A stretch of 64,000 nucleotides of DNA from Gracilinanus agilis. Its lineage: Eukaryota. How positions within the stretch are numbered: position 1 is the first letter of the stretch; each line of letters begins with the position of its first letter. Below are positions 1,253 to 53,250 of this stretch, piece after piece. The notes below the pieces were generated by a model. The model saw only the letters and a list, made by a program, of their open reading frames with translations, was not told the origin of the DNA and searched no databases. The position numbers and the translations under genes were made by a program. The stretch is taken from the NCBI RefSeq assembly GCF_016433145.1, contig NC_058133.1, positions 195,642,773 to 195,706,772 of the forward strand, in the 5' to 3' direction.

Positions 1253-1764
1253 ATGGGTTCCGAGAACGTATCTGAATCTGTATAGATGGGCACCGACCGT
1301 CACCTGCGTAAGGAAGAAGGGTGAGTGAGGAGCAGGGCCATCCCGCGCCTCTTGTTCTTCCAGCCAACACCAGCCTTCTAGCTCAGTCTGCGGGCAAGAC
1401 CAAAGCTCAGAAACAAATTTTTCAATCTGGGGGCAGGGGGAAGTTAGGAACATTGTCCAAGAGGAAAGACCCAGTAAACAGGGTAAAACACTTCTCCACC
1501 TGTCCCTCCCTCCATCCCGAGGACTACTTGGAAAGCCCCGAGCCCTGTTCTCTCACCTCCTTGGGTGAGGCAGCCGGCTATCTCGGCACTGGAGACGCTG
1601 TGGGCCAGAGAGGTCCCCAACTCTTCCCCAGGGCTGGGGCCAATATGGCCAGCTCCTGCAGCCGATCACTTTCTCTGGAAAATTCAGAATGGTCCTCTGC
1701 AGCCATTCCTTATGGCTCAAGTTTTATAAGGAGGAGAAGAAACAATCGTGACCAAAAAAGGCCA
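1253..1764 (+). pseudogene. T-box copy 1 exon 1 (N-terminus and start of T-box)
   Basis: ATG at 1253 (MGSENVSESV*MGTD, TAG 1283-1285). Frame starting at 1671 reads FSGKFRMVLCSHSLWLKFYKEE; after a 1-nt deletion it reads ETIVTKKG CA|gtatgt (donor 1765). Compare TBX21 [32 protein letters not shown]. The 5' limit is approximate. Confidence 0.8.
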
Positions 1765-1899
1765 GTATGTGAGAGGCTGGGTCCTCGAAGCCCAGGAACG
1801 CAGGAACCCTAACGGGGTCTCTCTTTTTTTTAAGCCTCGATCAAGTACACTCGGAAACTGGGATTTAGTATGAAGCGCATGGCGGCTCCTTTTAGTGGG

Positions 1900-2440
1900 A
1901 AGTACGGGAAAAGGAGGGAAAAGGAGTGAAAAGACCTCTCGGCTACCAGATCCCCACTTTAAGAGTATATTGTCATGGAAAGACCTCCAGGAATTGATGC
2001 AGAGGGAAAGGAGCAGAGCCAGAAGAACATTGTACGCAGAGACTGATACACCGTGGTAAAATAGAATGTGGTAGACTTCTGTACTAGCAGCAATGCAATG
2101 ACCCAGGACAATTCTGAGGGATTTATGGTAAAGAACGCTACCCACATTCAGAGGAAGAACTGCAGGAGTGGAAACAGAAGAAAAACAACTGCTTGAACAT
2201 ATGGGTTGAGGCAGACATGATTGGGGATGTAGACTCCAAACTACCACACCAATGCAACTATCAATTTGGAAATAGGTCTTGATCAATGACACATGTTAAA
2301 ACCAGTGGAAATATGCATTAGCCATGGGGGATGGGTGGAGCTGGGGGGGGGGAGTGAAGGGGAAAGTAAGAGCATGAATTATGTAACTACGTTAACTTTT
2401 CTAAAAAATAAATATTAATAAATGTTTTTTTAAAAAAGAG
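1900..2440 (+). mobile_element. Marsupial L1 3' end fragment (in T-box copy 1 intron 1)
   Basis: Contains gacctccaggaattgatgcagag..gagcagagccagaagaacattgtac, shared with the other L1 3' fragments in the window; ends in an A/T-rich tail. Confidence 0.65.
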
Positions 2441-3785
2441 TATATGTTCAAAAAACGGGGGTGGGGGGTGGGGTAGGGGAAGACACAGTTAGGTGGGACT
2501 GTGTATATAGAGCCAGACCTGGAGTTGAGAGGACCTGAGTTAAAATTAAACTTCAGACTCTTTTTAGTTGTGTGACCCTGAGCAAGTCACTTAACTCCGT
2601 TGGGGTGGTGGTGGGAAGGACAGGGAGGGAAGGAGGGAGAGATAGAGACAGAGAGAGAGATGGAGAGAGAGTTAGTTAGTTTTGGAAAGGAAAAGATGGC
2701 TAAGGGAGTCAATGATGCTCTTCAGCCAGAAGGACAAGGGCAGATAGGTGAAATAAGCCCAAAGATCCAGGAACTTACAAAACCTATCTCACTTATTTTC
2801 TGGGACAATGTCTGAAGTATTATTAATTATCTCGAAATGCTCTATTCCCTTTCTCCTCTTGGAGAGAAATGGCAGTGAGTGGATGCTAACTACTAACTGC
2901 TGAGTGGGGCAGAGCATTTGAGGCTGACTATGCAGGTTCTAGTTAAGGGCCTCTAACAACCAGAAGAAAGTGAAACTTGCAACCTACTGGCAATTGGTTA
3001 GTGAAAAACTGTTGAGCACAGATTTTTGCCACTGTTATTTGACCCACTGGGCTATTTATTTTGGGAAACAAAAATTCAGGAATGGGGAAGTGAATAAGCA
3101 TTTATATAGCTCCTACTATGTGCCAAGCTATTACTTGGCACCACTACTAAAAAAGATACATTTTGTTTCATTTAATTCTCACAACAACCCTGTGAAGTGT
3201 AGAATGTTATTAATATCCCCATTTTACAGTTAAAGAAACTGAGGTAAACAGAGAGGTTAAGAGACTTGCCCAGAGTCACACAGCTAATAAATATGAGGCT
3301 GGATTTCAAATTGGTCTTCCTTATTCCAGGCACAGCCATTATACTCACTGTGCACAACCAGCAGCTGGTAGGATTAGATGTAATTAGATACACTGAATTG
3401 TTGATGATTCTGCACCTTTCTTTGTATGATCTTTAAGCTTTAATCAGCATCTGACCTGCCTGTTACCCAGGATATGAGATGAGGAAGACCACAAGGAGAC
3501 ATGACCTTGAGCAAATTACTTTCCTTCTATGAGTCTTCTGTTCCTCATCTATAACATGAGGGGAATAAGACAAGCTGATTTCTAAGGTGCTTTCTCTCTA
3601 ACATCCATACTTTCTCATCCCTTAAGTAATTGACATGGAGAATAGAAGAGGGTTTGATACTGCTGAGGGAGGCAAGAAATCACCAGACAGTTCTCATGAC
3701 CTCTATTTCCATAAGAAAAACTGTGCAATGAGGAAAGTTGGGGTAGAATCCAGTGCAGGTAGCTCCAATCTGCAGAATGATAGCA

Positions 3786-3949
3786 NNNNNNNNNNNNNNN
3801 NNNNNNNNNNNNNNNNNNNNNNNNNNNNNNNNNNNNNNNNNNNNNNNNNNNNNNNNNNNNNNNNNNNNNNNNNNNNNNNNNNNNNNNNNNNNNNNNNNNN
3901 NNNNNNNNNNNNNNNNNNNNNNNNNNNNNNNNNNNNNNNNNNNNNNNNN
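3786..3949. other. Assembly gap (N run) in T-box copy 1 intron 1
   Basis: 164 consecutive N. Confidence 0.99.
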
Positions 3950-4757
3950 AAGAGAAAGAGACAAAGATAATGAGAGAGAGATTAGGGGACAGCAGAGAGG
4001 GAGAGACAGAGAGACAGAGATAAACTTTGGATGTGGTCTTTGGGTAATTCACCCCACTTCCCTCCAGCAGCCACCCTCTAACACATAAAGATATACACTC
4101 AACTCTGCCCCACTAGAGCTCATTTGGGTTTACCTATCAGGACTATGAACTTCAACTGGCATTGGTCAGTAACTGAAAAGATTCACTCCTATCCATTTGC
4201 TCTTAAGTTTGTCCAAGTATGGTAGAGGAAGAAAAGGGCAGAAAGAAAGCTTTTCATGTCAATAGCTTCTGAATTTTAGTAGGTAGAACTGGAAAAAGGC
4301 TTCTCATAAACCAACTAATGAATTTCAATTGAAACCTGAGGAGACTATGGCCCAGAGAAGTGATTTGCTCAGGGTCACACAGGCAGGTAGTAAGTGGCAG
4401 AATTAAAAAAAAAATGCCATCGATCCAGGAAAATGGGCAGAAAGGGGTTTTGTCCTGTCCTTCTCCCATCCCCAAGCATGATGGATAATCCCAGGGAACT
4501 AGAAGGAAGTGGCAGTTGTATGGTACAATTTCATTCTCACTGGGAGGAGGGAAAAGGTCAGGGCCTACACAAGCCCTGCAGCCTGCTCTTTTACCAATAA
4601 ATGTTCAAGACCAGTCAAAGTAGCAAGTTGAAACTATTAAGGAATCCCAATTGGGGGAGGCTTAAAGACATCTAGAGGAAAACTGACCTTTATTACTGCC
4701 CATTCCATTCTCAATTTGCTGCAACTCTCCCAGATCACTCAAAACAAAACAAAACAG

Positions 4758-4945
4758 GGGGCAGCTGGGTAGCTCAGTGGAGTGAGAGTCAGGCCTAGAG
4801 ACAGGAGGTCCTAGGTTCAAACCCGGCCTCAGCCACTTCCCAGCTGTGTGACCCTGGGCAAGTCACTTGACCCCCATTGCCCACCCTTACCAATCTTCCA
4901 CCTATGAGACAATACATTAAAAGTACAAGGGTTAAAAAAAAAAAT
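4758..4945 (+). mobile_element. Marsupial tRNA-derived SINE (SINE1_MD-like)
   Basis: ggggcagctgggtagctcagtgg..ggaggtcctaggttcaaa..ctgtgtgaccctgggcaagtcac with A-tail. Confidence 0.85.
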
Positions 4946-6023
4946 ATATTCTAAAAAAAAAAAAATCCTTACCTTTTGTCTTAGAATCAGAACTGTGTAT
5001 TGGTTCCAAGGCAAAAGAGCAGTAAAAATTGGGCATTGGAGGGTTAAGTGACTTCCCAGATTCACAAAGCTAGGTAATATCAGGGATCAGATTTGAATCC
5101 AGGACTTCCCATCTCTAGACCTGGCTCTCAATTCATTCAGCCACCTAGCTGCCACACTTCTAGGTCATTTAAAAAATATTTCTCTTGGAGATGGAGAAAT
5201 ACTGACCAGCTCTTCCTTTTTGGAAATGAAGTTCATTTGGGAACCTGTTAACTGATACTGGAGACTGTATGTTTTATTTTTATGCCTTTATCTTCTGTCA
5301 TAGAATCAATATTAAATATTGATTCCAAGGCAGAAAAGTGTTAAGGGCTAGGACTTGTCCAGGATCACACAGCTAGGAAGTACCTGAAGTCAGATTTAAA
5401 TCCAGGTCCTCCCAACTCCCCATCTGGCTCTCTGTCCACTTAGCCATCTAATTGCTTCTCAGCAAAAAGTTTCTGACAAAGCTGGAATTTTTGACAAAGC
5501 TGAAAGAACCCTGCACCCACTCACCCTTCCACAGATCCTCCCAGGTACAGTCCCGGAAGAGGTGAAATTTCTGAGGTTTTAATATCAGAACTTCAATAAG
5601 CTTCTTGGGCATTTATCCCTTCCTCATGTCCATTTTGGACTCCTCTCCCTTCCTTTCTCTAGTTCACCTTGCTCATCCTGTCTCCTAGGAAGAACACCTT
5701 CATAGATTAGAGTCCAGATCCTCTGGCCCAGGACCTAGGACTCCTGCTTCCCCCCAAACAAGGAGATCTAGAAGTTAAAGCCCTGCTATTTGGAGAAAGA
5801 TGAGATAAGAGAAAACTATGTTGTCTAAGAATAATGTCTCTGGCTTAGCCTGTGGATGAGTGGAGTGAAATGGAGACAGTAAGTGATTATAATTATTTGT
5901 TTATTGATTGATGGGAAATCAACAACCATTTAATAGGAAAGATCAATCAACATACTTGTTACACTCCATATGTTCCTCTGCCAAATGCCAGAGATATAAA
6001 GAATAATTTAAAATAGTCTATAC

Positions 6024-6354
6024 CCGTGATGGTGAGCCTATGGTATGTGTGCCAAAGATGGCATGCTGAGACCTCTCCGTGGGCATGTGTACTATCCCTG
6101 GCAGAGTAAGTTACTGGAAAGACAGAGGGACTCCAGCAGAGCTGCTCCCTTTCACCTCTCCACCAAACCTCCGCACCCTTCTGTACTTCTTCCCTCCCCT
6201 GAGCAGAGCACTTGGGCCACTCCCCTTCCATTCTCCCTCCCCTGTCTGGATTGGAGGGGGACTGGGCTGGGGAACACTGCATGCCATCTTGGGGAGGGTG
6301 GCAGGTGGTCTCTAAAAGGACAGGTGGTCTTTAAAAAAAGGTTTACCACAACTG
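6024..6354. mobile_element. hAT-type MITE (family A)
   Basis: Imperfect TIRs ccgtgatggtgagcc / ggtttaccacaactg; 8-bp TSD gtctatac / gtttatac. Homologous to 19916-20334. Confidence 0.75.
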
Positions 6355-6472
6355 GTTTATACCTAGGGCAGAGCAGTGCCTAATCCAAACTACTCTGGAC
6401 ACCTGGAAGAAGGTGGGCTGAGCAAATTCTCTCCTACTTTCCCTTCTCTCTTTTTTTCCCCCTTCTTTATAG

Positions 6473-6630
6473 ACAAATGTTCCCATTCCTGGCTTACAAA
6501 ATTCATGGGTTGAGCCCCATTGCTAGTTATCATATGTTTGTGGAAACAGTACCAACTGATCACCATTACTTGTGTTTTCAGAATGGCGAATGGGTTCATT
6601 TCAATGGAAAGGAAGAGAACAATATTCTAG
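6473..6630 (+). pseudogene. T-box copy 1 exon 2 (open frame, intact splice sites)
   Basis: Acceptor ttttatag at 6472, donor gtaagg at 6631. Reads QMFPFLAYKIHGLSPIASYHMFVETVPTDHHYLCFQNGEWVHFNGKEENNILG, homologous to TBX21/EOMES RMFPFLSF..GL.PT.HY..FV.VV..D..HWR.Q.GKWV.CGKA. Same intron phases (2 and 1). Confidence 0.92.
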
Positions 6631-7083
6631 GTAAGGAAGTTTGGAAAGCTGGTGGGAGTGAGGGAAGGGGCAGGTACTTGAGTGGATCAGCTAATGGGAT
6701 ATTGTTTCATTTGTCACTGATGTTATGGTGCCCTCTGGTGGGGCCCCTAGCAAACTCAATCAACCTTTTTTCCTTGTCCTTCATCACTCCTCCATACTTA
6801 TTGGGTTCCTTTATTTCCCCTCTCCACTCCCCATCTTTCCCAGCCCAACGCCCTCATCCTACCTTTTTCCTTTCTTTCTCCAAATCCTAGGTTTTTCTTT
6901 TTTCTGCTTTTAAAGTCTTTTTTTCTTATCTCAGTGCCAAATGATTCTGTAGTCAAGCCTCAGAGAAATCATGGACACCTCCTCCTACCCCAGGATTCCC
7001 TGATGAACCTCTCCAAGGTCAGGAACCCTCAAGATTCTCTCCCTATGGACAGAGAGGCCTAATAGATATACTCTTTTCTACAG

Positions 7084-7197
7084 GGAACTTTCTGATAGTA
7101 GCAGGACAGAAAACGAGATCTTATAGCAGGTAACCAAGTAAGCCTGAAGTTTCCATTGCTCATACTTCCAGAAGTGGTGGAAGAAGTTGTAGAAGGA
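7084..7197 (+). pseudogene. T-box copy 1 exon 3-like remnant (highly degenerate)
   Basis: Acceptor ttttctacag, donor gtaagt at 7198, located between E2 and E4. Reads GNFLIV...*..KPEVSIA versus GNRLYV...RQEVSFG, with an internal TAA. Confidence 0.5.
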
Positions 7198-7448
7198 GTA
7201 AGTAGAATCTATTCTAAAAATGGGTCCTCTTATTTTCTATGGGGCTTCAGACGATAAGAGGTCAGTTAGGTGGCACAATGGATAGAGTGATGGTTCTGGA
7301 GTCAGAAAGGCCTTAGTTCAAAACCTGGCATAGATACTTAATAGTCATGTGACCCTGGACAAGTCATTTAACCTCTGCTTGCCTCAGTTTCCTCAACTGT
7401 AAAGTGGAAATATAGATCATATCTCACTCCTTGTGGTTTCTATCATAG

Positions 7449-7603
7449 ATGATCATTTTAAGGTCCTGCCACAAATACCAGCCAAAGCTTCACATCTCAG
7501 AGGTGAAAGATGGAAAGCATAGACCCCAGGTTCCTCCTCCTCCTATATCTTCACCTTCCCGGAAGCAGAATTCATTGCTGTGACTAAATATCAAAACAGT
7601 GAG
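7449..7603 (+). pseudogene. T-box copy 1 exon 4 (frameshifted)
   Basis: ag|ATG ATC ATT... reads MIILRSCHKYQPKLHISEVKDGKHRPQVPPP, then a frameshift in a (cct)n run, then YIFTFPEAEFIAVTKYQNSE|gtgagg. Compare TBX21 [22 protein letters not shown]...HIFTFQETQFIAVTAYQNAE. Confidence 0.92.
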
Positions 7604-8716
7604 GTGAGGAGCAAACTATTGGAACACCAAGCCTAGGCTCTAGGGGGGAGGGTGGGTAGAGGAGAAAACAGGCAAACAGTCTTTTCTAAAGTATACAATG
7701 TGGGAGGCAGCTGGGTAGTTCAGTGGATTGAGACCCAGACCTAGAGATGGGAGGTCCTAGGTTCAAATCTGGCCTCAGATACTTCCTAACTCTGTGACCC
7801 TGAGCAAGCCATGTAACCCCCATTGCCTAACCCTTACTGCTCTTCTGCCTTAGAACCAATACACAGTATTAATTCTAAGATGGAAGGTAAAAGTTTTTAA
7901 AAAATAAAATGAAATGAAAATAAAGTACACCCTGTGTGCTAGGGGTACTCAACTTGAAGTCTATATTCTTGGGCAGCAGGTGGCTCAGTAGATAAAGTGT
8001 CAGACCTGGAGACAGGTGGTCCTGGGCTCAAATCTGACCTCAGATACTTCCTAGCTGCATGACTCTGGGCAAGTCACTTAACCCCAGTTTCCAAGCCCTT
8101 AGTGTTCTTCTGCCTTAGAACTGATACTTAGTAATATTGATTCTAGTGCAAAAGGTAGGTTTTTTTTTTTTAAAGTTTGTATTCTAACCAGGAAAGCAAC
8201 AAACATGAGGGAATAGGTTTTGAACAGGAAATGCTTGGTTCTAAGTTAAGGGTTCTTACCCATTGATGTCATGGATGTTTTAGGAAGTGAAGGCTATAGA
8301 CTCCTCTACAAAATGCTTTTTAAAAAAAATCAATATTTGAAGGAAAGGCACAATTTCTGTTAGAGATAAATGAAAATATAGTTGGAATTTTATTCCCATC
8401 CAAGTCTGCAGATCCTCTGAAGTCCAGGTTAAACTTCTGGTCTGGGCAGTCACAGGGAAAAGGCATTGGGGGGATGAAGGACATACAGTGTCAGAAACAA
8501 AGGCAAGAAGTCCCAAATGGGACATCTGATGGATGTCTTAGAATTGTTGAAGTATTCTTCTTCCCTTGTTTTACAGATGAATACCATGAGGTAACTTCCC
8601 CAAGGTCACCTAGTGCATCAGAACAAAGACTGAAGTTAGTTAGGTCTTTGGCTTTCTCTAGGTTTCTGAAGAGGAGGAGCCCCCTGCTCGATAGCTTCTA
8701 TTTCCTTTCTCTCTAG

Positions 8717-8788
8717 ATCCTTCAGCTAAAAATTCAGTACAATTCCTTTGCCAACAAATTTATTCAAAGGATACATCCAGGAGAAAAC
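8717..8788 (+). pseudogene. T-box exon 5 copy A
   Basis: Acceptor tctctag; reads ILQLKIQYNSFANKF, versus ITQLKIDNNPFAKGF. The donor is degraded. Confidence 0.82.
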
Positions 8789-9041
8789 TAAGTACTTGTG
8801 GGGCTCAGCTCCTTTTTCTGTCTTTACCTCTCTCCAAATATTCTAGGACAGGTAATGTCCAATCAATCCTCTCCTCTACCTTCTCCCAGAATTCTTTGTA
8901 TTGATATTATGAGTAGACCGGGAGGAAAATTAGTTAAATAAGAAGTAGGCTTGCAATTTTGGCACTGGTTGTAGGAGAGCTATTATAGAAGATTATATTG
9001 TCTTTAACCACATCCTTTCCCCCACCTTCTTTCCCTTCAAG

Positions 9042-9500
9042 GTGCCTTCCATCTGGTAGAATCCAGGGCAACTACTAAGACTTTCCTGAAAGTAATTCTG
9101 GTAGCTATTTATTAGATCTAGGAATGAGTGCTTACCAAGCCAAAGATTGTGTACCTCTGATCCCCTAGATCTTTGTTCAGGCCCCTTAAACCACCCTTAG
9201 ACTGCACTCAGAACAGCAGCACCTTACTTCCCTTGGGCATGAATGATATGAATTTGAACTTCTGTCTCTACCTTTGATGCCTTCCTGACCATAAATAGGA
9301 TACTGTAGTCCTTCTAGGAGATTGGCCAACTTCTTCCTTATGTAATTCCAAGGTAAATGGGGAAGGCTAACTCCAATTTGTACCCCAAATGTCTAGAGAC
9401 CCTGTCTTAGAGGAAGAGAAGAGCACTGAAGAAGAAATCTGGATGTATATCCAAAATCAGATAGACACGATTCATGACTGGGTGAAGGACATGTCTCGCA
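9042..9500 (+). pseudogene. TBX21 exon 6-like copy A (C-terminal region)
   Basis: Polypyrimidine acceptor cttcaag. Homologous to modules at 10695, 18331 and 20600. Contains LGEGH (ctgggtgaagga), versus TBX21 LGEGD. Multiple stops. Confidence 0.7.
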
Positions 9501-10365
9501 ATGATTCAAGCAAGGATGAAATGTCTTCAGTGTGTAAAGGAAGAGAGCTATGTGCCAAAAAGGAACTCATTGGGACAGTCTGGATGGATCAGCCATAGAA
9601 AGGTTTTTCACTTGGCTTTTAGTTTAGGGGTACCTTCTTTTCCAAGTCTAGAAAATCTAAGCAACTCCACTCATACAGTTCTTCTTCCCTCCTTGTCCTT
9701 CCTTATCCTTTATTCCTACTTCTTTCCAAATCTCATCTTGCATAGCCTATTCTTCTCTTCTTGTCTCTTTTCTCTGCCTGGACCTGTCCATATTTTCCTC
9801 TTATATCAATTTCAGAGAATCCAGTTGTCCAATCCCATAGAAACCAGAGAGAAGTCCTCCTCTCCCTTTATCCCTTGCTGGACCTCTCCAATGTCTACAA
9901 TCCAAGTTTATGGAGTGTCTGGAATTATGGAATGCCTGGTCTAGGGGCTTCAAGGTGGCTCAATGGATAGAGAGCTAGCCCTGGAAAAGGGTTCAAATCT
10001 AGCTTTAGACACTTTCTAGTGTCTGACCTTGGGCAAGTCACTTAATCTCAGTTGCCTTGCTCTTCCTGCTCTTCTACCTTAGATACTTAATATTGATTCT
10101 AAAACAGAAGAGGGAAAAAAATGTGCTCTAGGCTGTCATAGGGACAAAGTGGGTCAGGGTGATGACAAGATACTCCATCTGTATAAGCCCTTAGAATGAT
10201 CCAAGTATTCTCTTTGTCCCATTTTACAGAAAAGAAACCGAGGTGACTTCCCCAGTGCATCAGAGCAAAAACAAAAGCCCAGTCTTTGATCTTCCTAGAG
10301 GGTAGCTGTAGGCTTCCAAAAAGAATACCTTGAACTCACTGGTTCCTATTTCCTTTTGCTCTGAG

Positions 10366-10427
10366 GTCACACAGCTAAACATTCACTGTAATCCCTTTGC
10401 CAATGATTTTAAAGAAAGCTTGAATAA
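10366..10427 (+). pseudogene. T-box exon 5 copy B
   Basis: 62 nt, the length expected for TBX21 exon 5 (20 codons plus 2 nt). Reads VTQLNIHCNPFANDFKESLN. The donor gtaagt is mutated to ataagt at 10428. Confidence 0.88.
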
Positions 10428-10694
10428 ATAAGTGCTTATGGGGCTCAGCTCATTTTTATTTGTTTGTTTCCCCCTTCTTTGTCCACCAGGCTCGGAGTGT
10501 TCTCGGAGTAGTGCCTTCTCAGCCCTTTCTAATCCCCTCATCTCCTTTCTTCCATGTCTATGCTGAGGCTGTGGGTAAAGAGTCAACTGATTAGATAAGA
10601 AGCAGGACTGGAATTCTGATGCTGGGGGTAAGGGGATTAGGATTCTGGGAGATCCTATTACCTTTAATTACATGGCGTTTTGTTTTTTTCCAAG

Positions 10695-11190
10695 GTGACT
10701 TCCATCTGTAAAATCTAGCACCACACCGATATCTCCCCTGAAAGAGTTTCCACTAAGAAAGCCCTTGGGTTAGGTCAGGTGCTTGCCAGGCTAGGGAAGA
10801 AATATTTCTGACTCTGCCTCTTGATCCAGGACCCTCAGGTTTCTTTTGACTATAACTATGACACCCACTTTCAGTAGCAGCAACACCCTTCCCTTAGCAT
10901 GAATGACATGAAGCTAGAATTTCTATACTTTACCTGCCATGTCTAACCATTCCAGACAAAATGTTGTAGTTCCTCCTAAGAATTGGCTTATTTTCCTTTT
11001 GTGTAATTCAAGGCCAACAGTGAAAGCTTGACTCTAATCTGTACCCCCAATGCCCATGGACCCATCCCTGTTGGCCTAGAAGAGAAGAAGTCTAAAGAAC
11101 TTTGAATCTCTATCTCCAAATTAGATTCTAATTATTCAGGAATGAGTGAGACTCAGAGGAGATGCCTCTCACAATGATTCAGTGGCATTA
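10695..11190 (+). pseudogene. TBX21 exon 6-like copy B
   Basis: Acceptor ttccaag. Nucleotide homology to copy A. Contains MPMDP (versus LPMEP) and SGMSETQRR (versus SGLGEGDSKRRR). Stops present. Confidence 0.68.
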
Positions 11191-14099
11191 TGGATGAACC
11201 CTGCTAAATTTTTTTGTGTGTGTGCCTTTGTATGTGAGTTTTGAAGGGAGGAGAGCTGGAAAAAGTAGACTTTCTTATTTGTTAGGACACTTGGCTCATT
11301 TTATGCTTTTCTTTTTTAAAAATGTGGTAAAAAAAATAAATTAAATTAAAAGTGTGGTCAGCTGACCTGCCTTGGAAAGGAATCCCAGATGTCTCTAAAG
11401 TGGGTCTATTAGGTGCCTTCCTTCAGAGGGGGATGGATGGACATCCTGGAATAGTCAGAAATAAAAGTGATGGTGAAGAAGGTCTTACATTTTGTCTAGA
11501 TTTTAGGGGAGGGAAGGGGTCTATTTTTTAGAAGCTATTTATTGTCCACGATATAAGATGCCAATATCTTTGGTTCATTTACTTTTAGAAATAAACTTGG
11601 AAAAGTCTGCCTGTCTCAATGTGAAGGGGACAAAGGTAAGGTGGGTACAGGAGATGACAAAAGAATTTGAGCCTTCCTAGGGTCCCATGGAGAAAGTGAT
11701 GGATTTGACTCCCTTTGGGATTACAATACATGAGTATAGAGATCAGCTCTCTGGCTTCCCAAGCTTTCTCCCCTGTCCTGCTAACTTGTTTCATTTTTGA
11801 AAGGGCAGAAGAACCTGAGTAAACCACATGTTCCCTTCCCTGGCTTTCCTGTATAGTGCTCATGCTTGGATAAATGGGAACCAAGGCTGACATAAAGCAG
11901 AGCCATGATTTTGGTCTGCGTCTCTGTTAAACACCTGTTGAGGACATTGGTTCTACAACTAGAGGAGATAGTTGGAGATCCTGTGGTTATAGACTCATAA
12001 TAATAACAAAGAAGTCTGAAGTGGTCAAAGCCTTTTTACAACAACCCTTTGATGGCAAGTCCTGGGAGAAGGTATTATTATCCCCATTTTATAGATCAAG
12101 AAAATAAGGTTTGGATTTGTTAAATGATTTCCCTATTGGTCGCATAGTCTATGTCTGAGTAAGATACTAAAAAACAATAGATCGAGCTAGAAGATACCTT
12201 AGAAACCACCTACTAATCCTCACTGAACAACCAGGGAAACTGCCCAAGAGTGTGAAATGATTTGCCCAAGGGTCACTGGTGGTAGGCAGCAGACTAGGAA
12301 GGTAAGTTCAAAATCCTTGCTCTTTTTCCTTTGTTACATTCCCTCTGGTGGGGAGAGTCACACTCAGAGAGGAAGTGACTCTCCCCAGCTGATTCAAGCA
12401 GCTAGTGACAGCTGGGATATAAACCAAGATTCTCTATGTGTCCCATTCTGCCTCCCGTAGAGATGACTCCTCACCTATCAAGGGTCCCTAGGTCAGCAGC
12501 AATGTCCAGCAACCAAGAATGGATATGAGATTGAACTAACTCCAAAGGTCATAAACTTTAAATATGTAGCTGCAAAGGAGGCAGAAGACAGTTGAGGTCT
12601 GGGGTTAATTTTACTGGAACTTAGAAAGTCATAGAGATTCTCCTTAAACAAAGAAGGTGTGAAATGGAAGAGAGACCTGGAAGCAAAGGGTCCAGTCTTG
12701 AGGTGACTTGCCTCTGCCCAATCATATCCCCTCAAAAACATATACATGCAGGGGCAGCTAGGTGGCTTGGTTGACTGAGAGCCAGTCTTGGGTTCAAACC
12801 TGGCCTCAGCCATTTCCTAGCTATGTGACCCTGGGCAAGTCACTTAACTCCCATTTCATAGTCCTTACTGTCCTTCTGTCTTGGAACTGTTGTGAGGAAG
12901 ATTAGTTAGTAATAGTGTTGGACCTAGCAGGAAGGGCTGGAGGATTCCAAGTAGGAATGAAGGAGCAGGAAGTAGGGCTTGTGCTCTGAGAGAGACTCCA
13001 TTAGTGGTTGGCACAAACTGTTGCTAGCCCTGGGAGATCTCAGAGTTAAGGACACCCTGCATCCTGATTCCCGGGGATCCTGAGTGGTGGTGGCTTTCAG
13101 CAAGTGGACAAGACCTGCAGAGCTCCACCAAGTGGAGGAGGGATTTGGGATCTGGTGGACAGCATCTCAAGCACACTCTCTCTACTTGGGTATCTTGGAC
13201 CACCTTGGCTTTTGGCATCCTGTGATCATCTTTGGATTACCATGAGAACCCTCAAAGCCACCCTCAGGCCCTTTAGCTGTGCTGGTCAAACCTGGCTGGA
13301 ACCAGGTTTGAAACAGCCTCCCAGTGACTCCAGTACTGCTCCTTTGAGCCCTGCCTGGCCTAGGTCAATTAGAATTAGAGTAGACAAGTCCTCCCCTTGC
13401 CCCTGTGATTTGCCCTTTAGGTTTTTAAGTGCAGAATTCCCTATCCCACCTTTATTTAGTTAATCATAATTAAACAGTTAAAAACCTTTACCTTGCCTGC
13501 TGGTTCCAAAGACCCTGGTCTAGGGTGAGCAGGGTGACCATTGGGGCCAGCTGCCATTCTTGATTCTTGGTCTCCCTATCCTGGCTGGTCCTGTCTCTCC
13601 TTCAACCTAGTGTGTGTACCCACAAACCATTAGGTCACATTTTACATACCTGGTGCCCCACCTTTTTTACAGAACCAATATGTAATATTGATTCTAAAAT
13701 GGTAGGCAAAGGTTTAAAAAAAATACACATGTGAGGCACTAAGTAGTTTAGTGGATAGAAAACAAGGTCTTGAGAAAGGAGGTCCTGGGTTCAAATTTGA
13801 TCTCAGATACTTCTTAGCTGTGTGACCCTGGACAAGTCATTTAATCCCACTTGTCTAACTTCTACCACAATTCTGTCTTGGAACCTACCCATTTTAAGGC
13901 AGAATGTAAGGGTTTCAAAAAATATACACATGTTGTCTGAAAAACAACCCATAGAGAAAATGCCTACTTCTATTGCATTTGGCCCATTACAACTCATGGG
14001 GACTGAAGCTCCAGTATTTGTTGTAGAGTGGCAAGGAAGTGGGGGTGATAGGAAAGAGAAGAGGGAGTCAGTTTAGTGAATAGACTCTGCTCTTTCAAC

Positions 14100-14640: not shown

Positions 14641-15049
14641 AAATTCTCAGAAGAGGGAATTTACTGATAGGCTTTCTGTGTGGGTTTGGAGGCAGAGAGA
14701 GGCAGGTTTAAAATTGGGCCAGAGGCTGCCGAGAAAGATGAAGCCGATTCAATCTGCATAAAGAAGTTGATTGAGGGAACTATCTGTTATTGCCAGCACA
14801 GGGATAGAAGAACCCCAAAGGCCCAGCCGCCAGTCCTTCTCCTCCGCAAAGCCAGAAAGACTATGCCACTTTCAGCCAGTCGGAGGAGCAGCGAGAGAGA
14901 CAGCCGTCCCTCCTGCATTTCATTCTCCACTAACCCAGGTCGGGCGACTGTCGTGCAGTCATTTAAGGCTACAGCTGCTGGGAGGCAAATGCCCTGACAG
15001 TCAGAGGGGAAGCGGGAAGCTTCCAGGGCTTCCCACTCGGTTGCCCACT

Positions 15050-15528
15050 CCTTACCAGTTGGAGAGTCCGGAAGACTCGCTCTCAAGTCAGGTTGATGTA
15101 CCGCGGTGCCTAAGGACAAGAAGCCGGGAGCTGCGAGGAGCGCAGTGCAAGGCCGCTACGTCTACTAGCTCGAGCCGGGATCCCTGTTGGACGCCGGAGG
15201 AGCTGACAAAGACTGCAGAGGCGGCTACGACTGGGCACAGGACGTCGCCTACCCAGGATTCTCGATGGTGCTCGTGGGCACCCAGTCAGCCACCAGCCGG
15301 GGCCGCTTCCAGCCCGCCAGTGCCTATCCTGACACTGTAGACGTGGTGGGTGGAATGGATCACCAGGACTACCAGCTCTTTCCTAGTTCCAAAGCGAATC
15401 TGTCCTACGGATCCAGGAACACCAAATGATTTCTCTTGAAGACAGAGATCGCTTTCTCCGGAAAACCATTCCTTGTGGCTCAGGTTCTATAGGCAGCAGA
15501 ACGAAAAGATCCTTACCAAGTAAGGCAG
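15050..15528 (+). pseudogene. T-box copy 2 exon 1
   Basis: Reads QGRYVY*LEPG (versus TBX21 QHRYFYPEPG) ...IAFSGK, then a ~20-nt deletion, then HSLWLRFYRQQNEKILTK*GR|gtaagt (donor 15529). Stops at 15166, 15427 and 15521. The 5' limit is approximate. Confidence 0.85.
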
Positions 15529-15961
15529 GTAAGTGGATGGCTGTGGAGTGAGAGGTCTGAATCTTCCAGGAGCTCCAGACGGAATCTCCCTTTCTTAAGC
15601 GTTGCTCAAGCTCACTACTAGGAGCTGGGGTATGGCACTTCCACTTGGCTTCTCTTTTTAGCGTCTGTGATTTAGAAGAGGCTTGTCAAGTTCTAGATAC
15701 TCCTTTTAAGATCCTCTTCTCTCCTGGCCTGTCCTCTCTTCTCTCTTCTCTCTTCTCTCTTCTCTCTTTTCTCCTCTCCTCAGGCATCCTCTCCCTCCCA
15801 CCCACCACCCACCTCTCTCTTCCCTCTTTCTCTTTTTAGTGACAAATGGAAGTGAGTGGATACTAACACAATATTGGAAATAGCATTTACAGTAGACAGT
15901 GCTTCTTCCAATTAAGGGTTTCTATTGTGGGGAAAGAAAAAAAAGCCTTGCAACTTTTTTT

Positions 15962-16156
15962 TTTTAACCCTTATCTTCCTTCTTGGAGTCAATACTGTGT
16001 ATTGGCTCCAAGGCAGAAGAGTGGTAAGGGTGGGCAATGGGGGTCAAGTGACTTTCCCAGGGTCACACAGCTGGGAAGTGTCTGAGGCCAGATTTGAACC
16101 TAGGACCTCCCATCTCTAGGCCTGGCTCTCCATCCACTGAGCTATCCAGCTGCCGG
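15962..16156 (-). mobile_element. SINE1_MD-like SINE
   Basis: Reverse complement of the same SINE consensus, with T-tail. Confidence 0.85.
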
Positions 16157-16879
16157 CCCCCCCCCCCCCCCCCGCAACTTATTGATGATTGTTTAGTAAA
16201 AAAAAGTGTTTAGCACAAGTTTTTTTCCAGTGGATATTTGCTTTGAGAAAGCAGAATTCAGGAATGGTCTAAATGTCTAAGAAACTTTCCATTGTTTATT
16301 GGAAATTTTGAATCTTTCATTGTACAATCTTTATTGGGCCCTTAAAAACAAACAAACAAAAAAACAAAAAAACAACAACCCTTATCTTCCATCTTAGAAT
16401 CGATATCAGATCCAAGGCAGAAAAGCAGTAAAAGCTAGGCAATTGGGATTGTGACTTGCTCAAGAGTCACACAGCTAGGAAGTGTCTGAGGTCAGATTTT
16501 AACCGAGGACCTCATCATTTTAGGCCTGGCTCTCTATCCAGCTGCCCCTAGTAAACTTTAATCACCTTCATCAAAGTCAGGGAACAGGACTGACATTTCT
16601 TACCTCATCATCCAAGGTAGGAGATGGGGAAGACCATAGATCTGACACTAAGCAGACAAGTTACTTTCTCTCTATACATTATTGTTCATCTGCAATAAGG
16701 AGAAGACTTCTAAAATCTCTTCCAGTGATGAGATTCTGTAGGCCTTTAGGGAGTTTAGGTTTCTCTAGGATGGAAATATTTATTAAATTGAAAAAGCATC
16801 CTTTTATGTTTTGTAAGTCTTTATAAACAATTTGAATTATTATTTTTATTTTTTCAGATTACAAGTTGATACAATTTAT

Positions 16880-17935
16880 TTTTATTTTTATTTTTGTGTA
16901 AGTCTTTATTTAATTAATTAATTTAGAATATTTTTTCCATGGTTACATGATTCATGTTCTTTCCCTTCTCTCCTCCCTCCCCACTCCTGGAGTCGACCAG
17001 CAATTCCACTGGGTTTTACATGTGATACAATTTTTAATAATCATTTTCTGAACTGTTTGCAATCTATGTTCTTTCCCTCCTTCCCACCCCTGCCCCCTCC
17101 TGAGGAAGACAAGTAATATGCTATAGGTAGAGTATCATATAGCACTTATTTCCATGTTTATCCTGTCAGGAAAAAGGCATTTATTGTTTACACTAGAGAA
17201 AAGTTAATGGAGGAAATAAAGTGAAGAATGTTATGCTTCAATCTGCACTTGGACTCCATCTGTTCCTTCTGTGGCAGTAGATATCCTTTTTCATTATGAG
17301 TCCCTGGATGCTGTCTTGTTGACAATGATCCTTATCTTGTTGACAATAGTTAACTCAATCACAGTTATCATTATGCATTATTGTTGTTACTGTGTACAAC
17401 ATTCTCCTGGTTCTACTCACTTCACTTTGCATCTTTCCAGGATTTTTTTGTGATTGCCTTGTTTGTTATCTCTTATGGCACAATAGTATTCCATTGCGAT
17501 CATATACCATGACCTGTTCAGCTGTTCTCCAATCTCTTTTGGTTCCAGTTCTTTGCCACCACAAAAAGAACTGCTATAAATATTTTGGTACACATAGGTC
17601 TTTTTATTTAACCTACAGACCATAATAGTGGTATTGATAGGTTGAAGGGTATGCACAGTTTTATGGCTTTTTGAGCATAGTTCCAGATTGTCCTCCAGAA
17701 TGGTTGTATCAGTTTGTCATTCCACCAACAGTGTATTAGTGTCTGAACTTTTCCATATCCCCTCCAATATTTATCATTTTCCATTTTAGTCCTTTTAGCC
17801 AGTCTGATAGGTGTGAAGTAGTACTTCAAAGTTATTTAATTTGCATTTCTCAAATTAATAGTGATTTAGAGTATTTTCACATATGATTAGTTTTAATTTC
17901 TTCATCTGAGAATTGCCTATTCATTTCCTTCGACC
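16880..17935 (-). mobile_element. L1 fragment (ORF2 C-terminus and 3' UTR)
   Basis: ORF 17608-17829 MKYYFTPIRLAK..CWWNDKLIQPFWRTIW..IPFNLSIPLL matches the L1 ORF2 C-terminal region; the 3' UTR follows. Confidence 0.85.
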
Positions 17936-18330
17936 ATCTGTCAACTGGAGAATGCTTTGTAAAGAAGTGGGCAAAAACGTTTCCATTGACACATGCTCCC
18001 TTCCCCTGGGACATATGCTATTGGACCTCTTCTTCCCATTCACAGCTTCTCTCTCCCTCCACTTGGACTGCTCTTGGCCAAACCCCCATCACTAGTATCC
18101 ACAGACCTCTCTGTTTTTCTATGCCAACTTGGGCTTGAAAATTGATGCATTGTAATTTTTAAAATTTCCCAATTAGGATTTAGGTCTGGTACACTTTTTA
18201 GATTTATTTGGAGGAGTTTAAGGGAGGGGGCAGGGGTCTCTCTAGTGCTTCCTACTGCTCTTCCATCATAGCTCTACTTTTTAATGGTATGACCTATAAG
18301 ATGTCTTTCCCCCCCCTCCTCTCTCCTCAG

Positions 18331-18790
18331 GATGCCTTACAGCTGTAGAATTCAGTGCCAACACCTTCTCTGAACCAGCTCCTGATGACTAGATTTATCC
18401 CTTAGAACTAAAAGAGAGCTGACCAAGACAGAGACAAGGTGTTTTGGACTCCCTGGCATTTTATCCAGGTCCCTAACCCACCCTTGTAGGATGCCTATGA
18501 CTCTTCTCACAACAACAGCACTTTGACCTGGATGACATGAACTCTGGACTTCTGCCCTCCATTTCTATAGCTGCCATACTTCACGACTCCAGACCGGATG
18601 CTCTGGTCCCACTATGGAAGTGACCCACTTCCTTTTCATGGAACTCCATGGACAACAGTATGAACTGTCTCCAATCTATACCCTCAAAGGCCATAGACCC
18701 TATCACTGAAGCCAGGAAGAGAAAGGCTTCACAAAGAACTCTGACTTATGCCTGCACTGGGTGAAGGAGATCCTATGGATGCAAGGTGTT
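18331..18790 (+). pseudogene. TBX21 exon 6-like copy C
   Basis: Acceptor ctctcctcag. Reads FDLDDMNSGLLPSISIAAILHDSRPDALVPLWK and ALGEGD, versus TBX21 FRAVSMKPAFLPSAPGPTMSYYRGQEVLAPGAGW and GLGEGD. Many stops. Confidence 0.75.
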
Positions 18791-19617
18791 CAGTATGGAG
18801 AACCAGGGAACAAGAGAACAAGTAGGGATTTACTGGGTCACCTTGACTGATCAACCATAGAAATGTTTATCTCTTGGTTCTCAGGTTGAGGTGCCCTCTC
18901 TTGGGTGCCAAATTAACCCAATCAATCCCTTTCTCTCGGGCATCCCATCTCCCTCCTTCTTTATACCTTCTTTCTACTCCCTCTCCTCCCCACCTCCTAG
19001 CACCTTTCCCAACCTATTCCTCCCTTCTTATCTTTTCTCTTATTACAATTCCCCCGTCTTCTTTGCCTGGGCCTGTCCATATATTCTTCTGGCTCTAGTT
19101 CTAAATGATTCTGCTCCAAGCCTCATAGAAACCAGAGACATCTGCTTCTACCCGAAGTTCACATAATGAACCCCTTCAATAGGGAGAATCCAAGTTCATG
19201 GAGCCCCAGAAATCCCAGTTTAGATTTAAACACTTCTTAGTGCCTTAGTCACTTCTCTTCCTCCTTATATCTGCTTTTCTGGAAATTAATAAAAGGAATG
19301 GTGTCCCTTCATACTCCTCCCTGACCACAACCACCTTTCCCTGGTGCTGCTTCCAAGGTTGTACTTTGCTTATTTTGGATGCCTGTGTGTGGATGCTGAG
19401 GGGACATGAGCCCTAGGCAGATGGTAAGATAGGTAGGCCCTAGGAGAAGACTTGGAATAATTAAAATATTCTCCTGCTCTCACTTTTCAGCTGAAGTAAC
19501 TAAAGCGACTTCCTTAAGGTCACCCAATGTGCAAAAACTGGTCTGGTTTTCCCAGAGGAAAATTCTAGATTTCCAAAGAGAAGACTGTCCTGATCCTACT
19601 GGCTCCTTTTTCTCTGG

Positions 19618-19679
19618 ATCACACAGGTAAAAATCTACTACAATTCCTTTGTCAAAGGCCATAGAGAACACTTTCATTC
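19618..19679 (+). pseudogene. T-box exon 5 copy D
   Basis: Reads ITQVKIYYNSFVKGHREHFHS, versus ITQLKIDNNPFAKGFRENFES. The acceptor AG is mutated to GG and the donor is displaced. Confidence 0.88.
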
Positions 19680-19915
19680 TGGAGAAGGCTTTGGATGCAT
19701 AAGTACTGGTGGGACTCAGCTCCTGTTTTGTGTCTCTATTCCTTTATCCACCAGACTCCAAGTGTTTTGGATGGTACCATTCAGTCTTGCCAAGTCCTCT
19801 CTACATTCTCCCAGGACTTTGTGTGGTAAGGTTGTGGAGAGAGAGAAAAGAAATTGCTTAGATAAGGAGCAGGCTTGGAGCTCTGAAGCTAGAGTGCAGA
19901 GATTAGATTCTAGGG

Positions 19916-20334
19916 CAGTGATGGCAAACCAAAGATGGCACACAAGAGCACTCTCTCTGGGCATGCGTGCTGCTACACCCCCCTTCCCCAGAAAGGCAGA
20001 GGGACTTGGGCAGAGCTGCTCCCTTCTCCCTTTCCACTGGGCCTGATGACATTTTTTCACATCCTCTACTCCTCTGCCCAGCAGCCCAATGGGAGCACAC
20101 AGGGAGTAAAATGGGCAGTACAGAAGCAGCAGAGATGGAGGGGAGTTGAGCACTTGGGTCACTCCCTTCCCTCTCTCTACACTGGCAGAGGACATTCCTC
20201 ACTTCACCTGCCCCTCTGCCCAGCAGCCCAGTGAGAGCGCTTCCTCCCTCCCTTGTGTGAGGTAAGGGGGAGGGCAAGCCAGCACCTGGTGAGGGGGGCA
20301 TGGCACGTAGTCTCTAAAAGGTTCACCATCACTG
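19916..20334. mobile_element. hAT-type MITE (family A)
   Basis: TIRs cagtgatggcaaacc / ggttcaccatcactg; perfect 8-bp TSD ttctaggg on both sides. Confidence 0.85.
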
Positions 20335-20599
20335 TTCTAGGGTCAACAAGGTGGCTCAGTAGATAAAAAGCCAGGCCTGGAGACAGGAGGTCTTGGTTCA
20401 AATCTGGTCCCAGACACTTCCTAGCTATTTGACTGTGGGCAAGTTACTTAACCCTAATTGCCTACCCCTTATTGCTCTTTTGCCTTGAAACTGATACTTG
20501 GTGTTGATTTCAAAACAGAAGGTAAGGGTTTAAAAAAATTTCTATGAGGTTGGATGAATTCTAATTTCATTCCCCCTCCCCCCACTCCTCTCTCCTCAG

Positions 20600-21300
20600 G
20601 GTGACTTACAGATGTAGAATACAGTGCTTATACCTCCCCATAACCAGTGTCTGATGACTAGAACTACCCACTAAGTAAAGAGGATACCTGAGAAGACAAG
20701 GATAAGTTCTGGACTCCCTGATATTTTATCCAGATCCCCTGGCCACCTTTGGCAGATACCTATGACTCAACTCACAGCAGCGCCATTCTTCCCTTTAACT
20801 TGGATGGCATAAACCTTGGTCTTCTGCCCTCCACTTCTCCACCTGCCATGTCCTATGACCCCAGACAGAATGCTTTGGTCCCATTATGGAAGTGGTCCAC
20901 TACCCTTTCATGGAAGTCCAAGGGCAACAGTTTAGACCAGGGATTCCCAAAGTGGGTGACACCACCCCCTGGTGGGTGCTGCAGCGATCCAGAGGGGCAG
21001 TGATGGCCACAGGTGCATTTATCTTTTCTATTAACTGCTATTAAAATTTTAAAAATTTAATTTCCAGGGGGCTAAGTAACATTTTTTTCTGGAAAGGGGG
21101 CAGTAGGCCAAAAAAGTTTGGGAACCACTGGTGTAGACTATCTCCAGTCTGTACCCCCAAAACCCATGGACCCTGTCACTGAAACCCTGTAGGAGGAAAG
21201 ACTTCAAAAGAAGCTCTAGTCCTATACCTCTAAGTCTGATTCTTATGTCTTAGCTGTTTGAAAGAGATATCCCAAATTGAGAAAAGGAGTATTTACTTTG
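20600..21300 (+). pseudogene. TBX21 exon 6-like copy D, interrupted by a hAT MITE
   Basis: Acceptor ctctcctcag. ORF 20749 contains LLPSTSPPAMSYDPRQNALVPLWKW (versus FLPSAPGPTMSYYRGQEVLAPGAGW). KPMDP follows the insertion at 20938-21130. Confidence 0.78.
20938..21130. mobile_element. hAT/Charlie-type MITE inserted in exon 6 copy D
   Basis: TIRs cagggattcccaaa / tttgggaaccactg; 8-bp TSD gtttagac / gtgtagac. Confidence 0.85.
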
Positions 21301-23483
21301 ACTGTCAGTAGAGGGAATGAGGGATGAGTAGTGCTGACCCATGAGAGTAGATGGGCACATTCAAGCTAACTCTACTGTAATACTGTCTCTGCAAAGCAGA
21401 AGTCTCCGCCCCCCTTGGGAGAAGACTCAGGACAAGACCACCAAGAATATCTTTCTTCTTGTTCCTCATGTCTGCTCCCCTAGAAGTCAATAAAAGGAAT
21501 GGTGCCTGTGCACTTCATAAACCTCTCTGACCACAGTCATTTTTTCTTTGTTTTGACTCCCAAGACTGAACTTTGCTTATTTGGTATGTCTGTCATGTGG
21601 GTGCTATGGGGAATTGAAAGGGGAGGGTAAACTCTCATCTACTTCTTAAGTCACTTTGTTCATTTTTTTCCAGTCAGAGTAAGGGAAACATCCTGGGTTT
21701 CTTTGATAGCATCTGGGTGCCTTCCTGCCTAGGGGAATGGGCATTCTGGAATAATTGAGTAGAGGGGAGTGTCTTAGAGTGTTTAGTGTTTCACCTCTAG
21801 TTTTAGAAAAATGTATGTTGTTGTTTTTTTTGAGGTCGTTTATTGTTCCTGATATAAAATATCATTATCTTTGGTTTATTGTTTCTTTTAATAAACTTGG
21901 AAGAGGCTGTCTGCATTAGTATAAAGGGAATCGAGGATGAGATGGGAACAGGGGACTGATTATAGAATTTGAACTCTCCTAGGGTCCCATGGGGAAAGCC
22001 AAATCCAAAGAAAAGGTGTGACTCCCCTTGGGGCATGTGATACATAAGAGAAGGGATCAGGTCTCTGATTTCCCAATTCCCAGGCTCTCTCTTATTCTTG
22101 GTGGAACCTTCTATGCTGTCTCACCTCTGTTAGTGCACAGAGAACTAGGCCAGTTATGTCCTCTCTTCCCTGCCTCCCCCATTTGGCACTGGTACTTGAA
22201 TAATTGGGAGCCAAGGCTACTATAAAGCAAAGCTGTGATTTTTTTCTGGGAAGCAGCATGAGTTCTGGAAGGAAGGATGTCCTTGAGCTTTTCTCCCATC
22301 CTGTCTATGTCCCTGAAATCCAGGATGTAGTAGACCCATGGTATATACCTGTCCAGCTCATAGGTTCTAAAACTGGAGAGGATCTTTAGAGATCCTATAG
22401 TACTACTCTCATCATAATAGCTGATATTTGTAGAGAGGTCTGAGGTGGGCAAAGATAGGTGGCAAAGGAAATAAAGATCTGTGCCAGGAGGCAGGAAGAT
22501 CTGAATTCAAATCTGGCCTCAGACCCTGGACACAGGATTGCTTAACCTCTGTCACTTAATCTTCACTTAAGAGTCACTTAATCTCTGTCTGCTTACGGAT
22601 TATCAACTGTGATATGGGAGAAATAACACTCCTACCTCCCAAGGTGGTTGTTAGGATCTAATTACATAAATTGTAAACTCTTAGCACATCACCTGAAACA
22701 TAGCAGGCACTTAATCAATGTCCATTCCCTTCCTTTTACAACAACTTTTGAAGGTTAATCCTTCAGGGGATATTGTTATTCCCATTTTACAGATCTAGAA
22801 CTGAACTTTGGAATCCCTATGCGAGGCAAGATTCTCAGATGCAGGTCTCACACATGAGATGGAAAAGTACCTTGAAAGATCTAGTCCTCACTGAATAGAT
22901 GCAGAAAAGAGCCTAAAGAGGAAAAATTATTTACCCAAAGTCATAGTGGAGGGAAAGAAGCAGAAAAGATTTCAGGCTAGGTCCAAATTCAGTGGGATTT
23001 TTTCCCCTTTGCCACAATGTCTTGGTGCAAAAAAAGTCATCCCCAGAGAGGGAGAAGTGATTTGCCCAAGTTCCTAGGGCCAACAGTTAGCAGATCTGAG
23101 ATTTGAAGCAAGGTCTTCTATGTGTCCCATTATGTGCCACGAAGGGATAAGGGTCTCCCCATCTATTGAGATTTCCTATATAATAGGCACAGTATCCAGA
23201 AACCAAGAATGGGCATGAAGCTGGATTCTACATCCAAAGACCATGGGATTTAATTATGGATATGGAGAATGGTTGAAAAAAGACAACAGAGATCTGGGTC
23301 TGCCTTTATTGGAGCTCAGAAAGTCATGGTAATTCACCTTAAAACAAAGAGGGCCTGAAAAGAAATAGTTACCATGGAGGAGGGACCCAGGATCCCAGGA
23401 ATCATTCAAGAGGAAGTCTGCCTGCCTGCAAGCAGCTTCTCTACTCTTTTCTCAACCACATGCAAACACAGACACACACTGCT

Positions 23484-35063: not shown

Positions 35064-35264
35064 TTTTCTTTAAACCCTTACCTTTCGTCTTGGAGTCAAT
35101 ACTGTGTATTGGCTCCAAGGCAGAAGAGTGGTAAGGGCTAGGCAATGGGGGTCAAGTGACTTGCCCAGGGTCACACAGCTAGAAGTGTCTGAGGCCAGAT
35201 TTGAACCTAGGACCTCCCATCTCTAGGCCTGGCTCTCAATCCACTGAGACACCTAGCTGCCCCC
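35064..35264 (-). mobile_element. SINE1_MD-like SINE with TSD
   Basis: Flanked by the direct repeat catcactaatttt. Confidence 0.85.

Positions 35265-48851: not shown

Positions 48852-53250
<4,399 letters not shown>

Follow-up and report, generated by a model that had tools for sequence, protein, structure and literature searches.

A decayed, intron-bearing T-box gene of Gracilinanus agilis that probably descends from a working marsupial TBX21-like gene

A stretch of 64,000 nt from the Gracilinanus agilis genome (assembly GCF_016433145.1, contig NC_058133.1, positions 195,642,773 to 195,706,772 of the forward strand; hereafter the window, numbered from its first letter) contains T-box relics upstream of OSBPL7 and SP6, and is a marsupial-type locus. 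One of these relics, copy 1 (1253-9550, plus strand), has the exon-intron layout of TBX21, the gene for T-bet. It is probably an intron-bearing pseudogene of a marsupial TBX21-like lineage, which inherited a working T-box and then decayed. The original prediction, made from the letters alone, had described copy 1 as a once-functional, fast-evolving T-box gene rather than a dead-on-arrival duplicate. This description holds for the lineage, since the stem of the clade that includes copy 1 was constrained (omega, the dN/dS ratio, of 0.22) and other members of that clade are intact, but the private branch of copy 1 is itself compatible with neutrality. The original duplication did not leave copy 1 dead, and copy 1 likely also went through a working phase of its own, for which the evidence is suggestive but short of proof.

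Structure and lesions of copy 1

The introns of copy 1 are retained at the TBX21 positions, unlike those of a processed pseudogene, and its intron, promoter, and 3' untranslated region (UTR) sequences are homologous to those of marsupial TBX21. Sequence, gene structure, and synteny all place it in the TBX21 group of the Tbr1 subfamily; the trees below cover TBX21 and the TBX21-like genes of this subfamily. The parts of copy 1 are as follows.

1253-1764, plus strand: exon 1 relic; its ATG (1253) corresponds to the TBX21 start in the alignment, and the donor GT at 1765-1766 is retained
3786-3949, no strand: assembly gap (N) within intron 1, the only long run of N in copy 1
6473-6630, plus strand: exon 2, open; both splice sites are present, and 3 nt have been inserted in frame
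6926-7049, plus strand: 3' portion of intron 2, with homology to the same intron of TBX21
7050-7083, plus strand: site of the lost exon 3, with about 21 nt of the exon left and no splice sites
7449-7603, plus strand: exon 4, acceptor AG and donor GT retained, frame broken
8717-8791, plus strand: exon 5 (copy A, NSFANKF), with the 3' extension common to all paralogues and a TAA at its end
about 9007-9550, plus strand: exon 6, first C-terminal unit, with at least five in-frame stops and at least one frameshift

The gap is separated from the exon 1 donor by about 2.0 kb and from the exon 2 acceptor by 2.5 kb. To its left, 3660-3773 matches intron 1 of Monodelphis TBX21; to its right, 5162-5255 corresponds to a more downstream part of this intron in Antechinus TBX21. 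Since the matches are in order, the flanks are collinear with TBX21 intron 1, and no reading frame crosses the gap.

Exon 2 is, as had been predicted, fully open with intact splice sites: 52 open codons lie between a polypyrimidine tract with AG at 6471-6472 and a GT at 6631-6632. By itself, it matches the Pfam T-box profile (PF00907) with 37.2 bits (cutoff 26, E = 3.5e-9), and exon 4 matches the T-box in each of two frames (19.9 and 23.9 bits). The best solved relative of exon 2 is T-bet (5t1j, E = 2e-9). The identity to mouse T-bet is 22/48 residues (46%), in line with the roughly 45% that the original prediction gave for human TBX21; the identity to marsupial TBX21 is 57-58%, so the lower figure exaggerates the rate of change of copy 1, part of the difference having arisen between the marsupial and human TBX21 genes. 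The eutherian outgroups in our comparisons were cattle DNA and an orang-utan protein. In an exhaustive profile search with exon 2, the top matches were not TBX21 but marsupial proteins annotated by NCBI as 'T-box transcription factor TBX21-like', the highest identity (55%) being to the intronless L2 proteins described below. A word-based protein search with the read-through open reading frame of exon 2 gave no match within its limited length window, and this result carries little weight.

The remainder of copy 1 is heavily damaged. Exon 1 has a TAG at 1283-1285 (codon 11), and several deletions of lengths not divisible by three are needed to align it. The 1-nt deletion that had been predicted at about 1736 is present in the assembly; we place it at about 1738, where it creates a TGA at 1749-1751. 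Exon 3 is deleted: about 235 nt of TBX21 sequence is replaced by 34 nt, and the core HPDSPNTGAHWM...KLKLTNN is gone. Intron 2 can be aligned to TBX21 up to 7049, and the alignment restarts in intron 3 at 7084. We had considered 6926-7019, 9793-9895, and 19097-19179 as diverged copies of exon 3, but the alignment with TBX21 shows that they are intron 2. Exon 4 contains a single frame-breaking event within 7519-7545, the exact position of which is ambiguous. A single slip is thus what was predicted, although its attribution to a (cct)n run is not favored by the MAFFT alignment, which instead has two deletions, one of 1 nt at about 7521 and one of 3 nt. In exon 5, the open frame closes with a TAA (8789-8791) directly before the GT.

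The T-box exons have four indel events in 457 nt, about the density in the flanking introns. The argument from 'so few indels or stops' therefore fails for the copy as a whole, given the loss of exon 3 and the lesions in exons 1, 5, and 6. With exon 3 lost and exons 1 and 4 frameshifted, there is no complete, foldable T-box domain, and no intact set of GRRMFP, HKYQP, or NPFAKGF is present anywhere in the 64-kb window. Stops, frameshifts, or both in exons 1, 4, 5, and 6, together with the missing exon 3, are not those of a functional coding gene. As assembled, copy 1 is unable to encode a T-box protein today.

Marsupial relatives and the placement of copy 1

Three kinds of TBX21-like relative were found in other marsupials. 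The L1 genes contain introns; intact ones occur in Dromiciops (XP_043859205.1), Trichosurus (XP_036611521.1), Macrotis (XP_074077063.1), and Antechinus (XP_051852589.1). These dasyurid, Dromiciops, Trichosurus, and Macrotis genes adjoin TBX21, and the Antechinus gene is about 48 kb from it. A second, dead T-box copy, which we call psi2, is located just downstream of L1 in Dromiciops and Trichosurus (L001:24952-26492, L002:19221-22170). Both psi2 copies carry an identical TAG at the Gln of VDQHHW, showing that psi2 was already dead in the common ancestor of Dromiciops and Trichosurus.

The L2 genes, which are intact in koala and Monodelphis, have no introns. In koala, XP_078005317.1 is accompanied by two tandem twins, giving three copies 5.2 kb apart and about 99.6% identical (L004:4760-17469), in which every T-box exon junction is precisely fused. 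Monodelphis has copies on a different chromosome than TBX21, among them XP_056677032.1 and LOC130458091, with an inverted neighbor and a predicted protein that has two T-boxes (L007:1-11800). The absence of introns, the precise junctions, and the location elsewhere in the Monodelphis genome are the hallmarks of retrogenes.

How does copy 1 compare with each of these genes? With true TBX21 (Monodelphis XP_001372361.3, Antechinus XP_051850646.1), it shares a Tbr1-subfamily T-box, the six-exon layout and intron positions, a homologous promoter, introns, and 3' UTR, and a neighborhood upstream of OSBPL7 and SP6. However, TBX21 of 12 marsupials forms a single cluster at 90% identity, with an omega of 0.04, whereas copy 1 lacks exon 3, has many stops, and lies at a different position. 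With L1, it shares the derived Lys in AYKIHG, the Pro in VPxD, the exon 5 extension, and two exon-6 units, as well as a tandem arrangement with a second, deader copy downstream. L1 is intact, though, and its intron 1 is short (0.5-0.8 kb), while intron 1 of copy 1 is 4.7 kb of TBX21-like sequence. L2 is the best-supported sister group of copy 1, but it has lost all T-box introns, has been amplified in tandem, and retains long open frames with an omega of 0.38.

Trees were built from per-exon nucleotide alignments treated as partitions (the T-box part of exon 1 and exons 2, 3, 4, and 5), with copy 1 lacking exon 3. A paralogue clade of L1, L2, psi2, and copy 1 is separate from marsupial TBX21 with a support of 99.5/98. 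Within this clade, L1 and psi2 group together (98.6/99), and copy 1 groups with L2 (74/73). The approximately unbiased (AU) test rejects copy 1 beside L1 alone (0.019), psi2 (0.024), or Monodelphis L2 alone (0.042). It also rejects copy 1 beside Monodelphis TBX21 (0.014), which rules out a recent origin from the species' own TBX21. Strictly informative sites are divided 6 : 2 : 3 in favor of copy 1 with L2 over the two alternatives. The residues shared with L1 had led us to consider copy 1 as the orthologue of Australidelphian L1, but nesting in L1 is rejected by the tree and the AU value of 0.019. The tree thus places copy 1 as an old member of the marsupial TBX21-like clade.

The grouping with L2 leads to a tentative proposal, which we consider possible but would not put first: that the intronless L2 genes descend from copy 1, their now dead, intron-bearing parent. 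In this scenario, a T-bet paralogue that arose by tandem duplication in stem marsupials would have been retrocopied to another chromosome; the retrocopies would have multiplied there and remained under purifying selection in both American and Australian marsupials, and the parent would have decayed at its original site. Orphan retrogenes, the parental genes of which were lost after retrocopying, have been described previously (PMC3548309, PMC4772013). If copy 1 is the parent of L2, the likeness is that a retrocopy survives while its intron-bearing parent decays; the difference is that the relic of the parent would still be visible here and that other intron-bearing paralogues survive in some orders.

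Selection, decay, and alternative explanations

Omega was estimated with a GY94-F3x4 branch model in a custom implementation on a fixed tree, with 192 codons (about 150 for copy 1) and site likelihoods pooled per exon. The controls behaved as expected, with a low value for true TBX21 (0.04) and a value near 1 for the dead control psi2 (0.94, p = 0.81 against 1). The L1 genes have an omega of 0.61 (p = 0.002 against 1) and the L2 T-box has 0.38 (p < 1e-5). The stem of the paralogue clade gave 0.22 (p = 0.01 against 1; p = 0.02-0.04 under two alternative trees). For the path that leads from the duplication all the way to copy 1, neutrality is weakly rejected (p = 0.044). On the private branch of copy 1, omega does not differ significantly from 1 (p = 0.27). 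The original prediction had also allowed for positive selection before inactivation; no branch has an omega above 1 with any support.

We suggest the following history. A tandem duplication of TBX21 would have occurred in the common ancestor of marsupials or earlier. The new copy would then have evolved under purifying selection about five times weaker than that on TBX21, and would have left several descendants, namely L1, the L2 arrays, and the dead copies. Copy 1 would have inherited an already diverged, working T-box, which the stem shows for the clade and which we infer for copy 1 itself. It would subsequently have lost its function and drifted for roughly half of its private branch, a fraction suggested by the omega of 0.70, by the changes at invariant residues, and by the absence of stops. 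During this drift, exon 3 would have been lost, stops and frameshifts would have accumulated in exons 1, 4, 5, and 6, the ancestral CpGs would have disappeared, and the base-reading Arg of GRRMFP would have changed.

Several observations weigh against a working phase of copy 1 itself. The omega of its private branch is about 0.70 (0.65-0.74), with a profile interval of about 0.39-1.35 that includes 1. The rejection of neutrality over the whole path is marginal and rests on 150-190 codons and a custom codon-model script. The divergence of the exons, about 0.36 per site, is about that of the alignable intron blocks, about 0.3 (0.26-0.49). Against a constrained coding phase, the original prediction had set neutral decay over the whole branch at the pace of nearby introns, and the outcome is divided, with whole-branch neutrality weakly rejected but exon and intron divergence alike. 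The AU test passes not only copy 1 as sister to L2 but also copy 1 as sister to L1 plus psi2 (0.25) and basal in the clade (0.33). Finally, the absence of stops, discussed below, reuses the observation that prompted the hypothesis.

These points are what one would expect if copy 1 were a secondary dead-on-arrival duplicate, that is, a copy of a diverged, working TBX21-like gene that never functioned itself and changed neutrally along its whole private branch. A basal placement fits a copy that was dead at its own birth, and the density of indels is intron-like. Of the nine ancestral CpGs, copy 1 has kept none, six having become TG or CA, and its GC content of 0.40 is like that of psi2, while the intact paralogues have 0.42-0.53; in both respects, it matches the dead copies. 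Nevertheless, there is no stop made by substitution in the 152 T-box codons, for which neutral simulation gives P of about 0.015-0.03 (about 0.03 at the length of the private branch). Furthermore, at residues that are invariant in nine intact genes, copy 1 has changed 10/48 (21%), psi2 31-32%, and the intact genes 0-11%, so that copy 1 has changed at about two thirds of the rate of psi2 even though its branch is no shorter. The point estimate of omega is below 1, compared with 0.94 for the dead control, although it can be distinguished neither from 1 nor from those of the intact paralogues (p = 0.10 for equality with L2). We therefore regard a copy that never worked as unlikely, though it is the alternative that deserves the most attention.

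The original prediction also proposed that copy 1 might have made a protein with altered or lost DNA binding, acting as a dominant negative or co-factor. The motif differences on which this was based, GRRMFP to GQQMFP and NPFAKGF to NSFANKF (A, at 8741), NPFANDF (B, at 10390), or NSFVKGH (D, at 19642), are all present in the window, and the GQQMFP of copy 1 straddles the junction of exons 1 and 2. We take R69 of brachyury to be the first Arg of GRRMFP, and F213 and F217 to be the Phe residues of NPFAKAF. The single base-specific hydrogen bond from a brachyury side chain is that of R69, and two residues of the last helix, F213 and F217, insert into the minor groove (PMC11828899). A T-box with GQQMFP would thus be without the base-contacting Arg, and NSFANKF would alter the minor-groove helix, as expected for neofunctionalization under positive selection. 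However, all nine intact relatives keep the first Arg, the Pro of NPF, and both Phe, and L2 varies only the second Arg. The changes in copy 1 are private: the two Arg have become Gln-Gln (CGG to CAA), the Pro has been replaced by Ser, and the Arg that follows GF by Ile. The sites of the Pro to Ser and Arg to Ile changes are invariant in the family, and such sites are also changed in the dead copies. The CGG to CAA codons, together with the loss of CpGs, fit CpG-type decay. Thus, the changes look like decay after inactivation and not like a new mode of binding; we find no support for a dominant-negative protein and think a neofunctionalized copy 1 very improbable.

That copy 1 is a working gene with lesions due to assembly or consensus errors is scarcely credible. 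Single-base deletions such as those in exons 1 and 4 are typical of some assemblies and there is a gap in intron 1, but more than a dozen independent lesions would have to be explained, including a deletion of about 200 nt at exon 3, stops made by substitution, and the loss of invariant residues. We thus retain, as the probable account, a pseudogene with a working T-box in its ancestry.

The remainder of the cluster and its meaning for the family

Downstream of exon 6, copy 1 continues into an internal repeat, which is followed by a second copy.

9793-11646, plus strand: internal partial repeat, part of the copy 1 gene unit, with an intron-2 piece, exon 5 copy B, an exon-6 unit, and a 3' UTR-like stretch
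9793-9895 and 19097-19179, plus strand: repeats of the intron-2 piece found at 6926-7049
10360-10428, plus strand: exon 5 copy B (NPFANDF), within the internal repeat
10725-11171, plus strand: second exon-6 unit of copy 1, within the internal repeat
11412-11646, plus strand: TBX21 3' UTR-like stretch, within the internal repeat
14877-22800, plus strand: copy 2, with promoter, exon 1, two exon-6 units, exon 5 copy D, and a 3' UTR-like end
15172-15529, plus strand: exon 1 of copy 2, with stops at 15404-15406 and 15521-15523 by alignment
18354-18822 and 20605-21285, plus strand: exon-6 units of copy 2, flanking the intron-2 piece and exon 5 copy D
19618-19686, plus strand: exon 5 copy D (NSFVKGH), in the matching repeat of copy 2

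The arrangement of the internal repeat is the same in Dromiciops, where the second unit is coding. Copy 2 lacks exons 2-5, its exon 5 copy D belonging to the repeat. The structure of the cluster accounts for the exon-5-like pieces A, B, and D. Copy B (10360-10440) retains a donor region of the TBX21 type, with AT now in place of GT, and it branches below all other paralogues, whereas copy D, its positional counterpart, bears the derived extension; this difference suggests gene conversion or a separate partial duplication. The split Arg codon is AGG in copy 2, Australidelphian L1, and psi2, while the C is kept in copy 1, TBX21, and L2.

Beyond the T-box relics, exons of an OSBPL7-like gene with Oxysterol_BP matches are located on the minus strand at 24462-31800 (profile matches at 24.4-28.3 kb, E = 4e-20 and 9e-10). 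The 3' end of OSBPL7 is only about 1.6 kb from the last T-box relic, and a single N occurs at 28845 within a minus-strand open reading frame that bears an OSBPL7 exon. SP6 (61125-62270, minus strand) is intact, with 381 aa and 97% identity to Antechinus Sp6; marsupial SP6 proteins all fall within one 90% cluster. This neighborhood agrees with the order TBX21-OSBPL7-SP6 that we take to hold at human 17q21. The window does not overlap the TBX21 locus of Monodelphis extended by 10 kb of flank. A young family of short interspersed elements (SINEs) of about 200 nt occurs at 4757-4942, 15998-16154, 35105-35264, 51392-51551, 53958-54141, and 56443-56642. These copies are 88-91% alike, and they are 90-97.5% alike to copies in two Monodelphis loci; in Australidelphian loci, the similarity is at most about 87% (stretches of at least 80 nt). 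This pattern points to a didelphid genome.

Taken alone, copy 1 is one more pseudogene, and its value is as a pointer to the marsupial paralogues of T-bet. T-bet is a master regulator of type-1 immunity. In marsupials, paralogues of it are intact in several orders, evolve under a constraint 10-15 times weaker than that on TBX21, and include retrogenes amplified in tandem. The TBX21-like genes are named by automatic annotation only; no relevant paper on marsupial TBX21 paralogues was found in the literature searched, in which the retrogene family likewise appears to be undescribed. Copy 1 and its neighbors help to date and order the TBX21-like duplications. If copy 1 is indeed the parent of L2, the locus would illustrate cleanly how a retrocopy can outlive the gene from which it came. 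There would then be an undescribed, marsupial-specific branch of the T-bet/Eomes group, with retrocopies in American and Australian marsupials and with the 'fossil' parent still beside TBX21.

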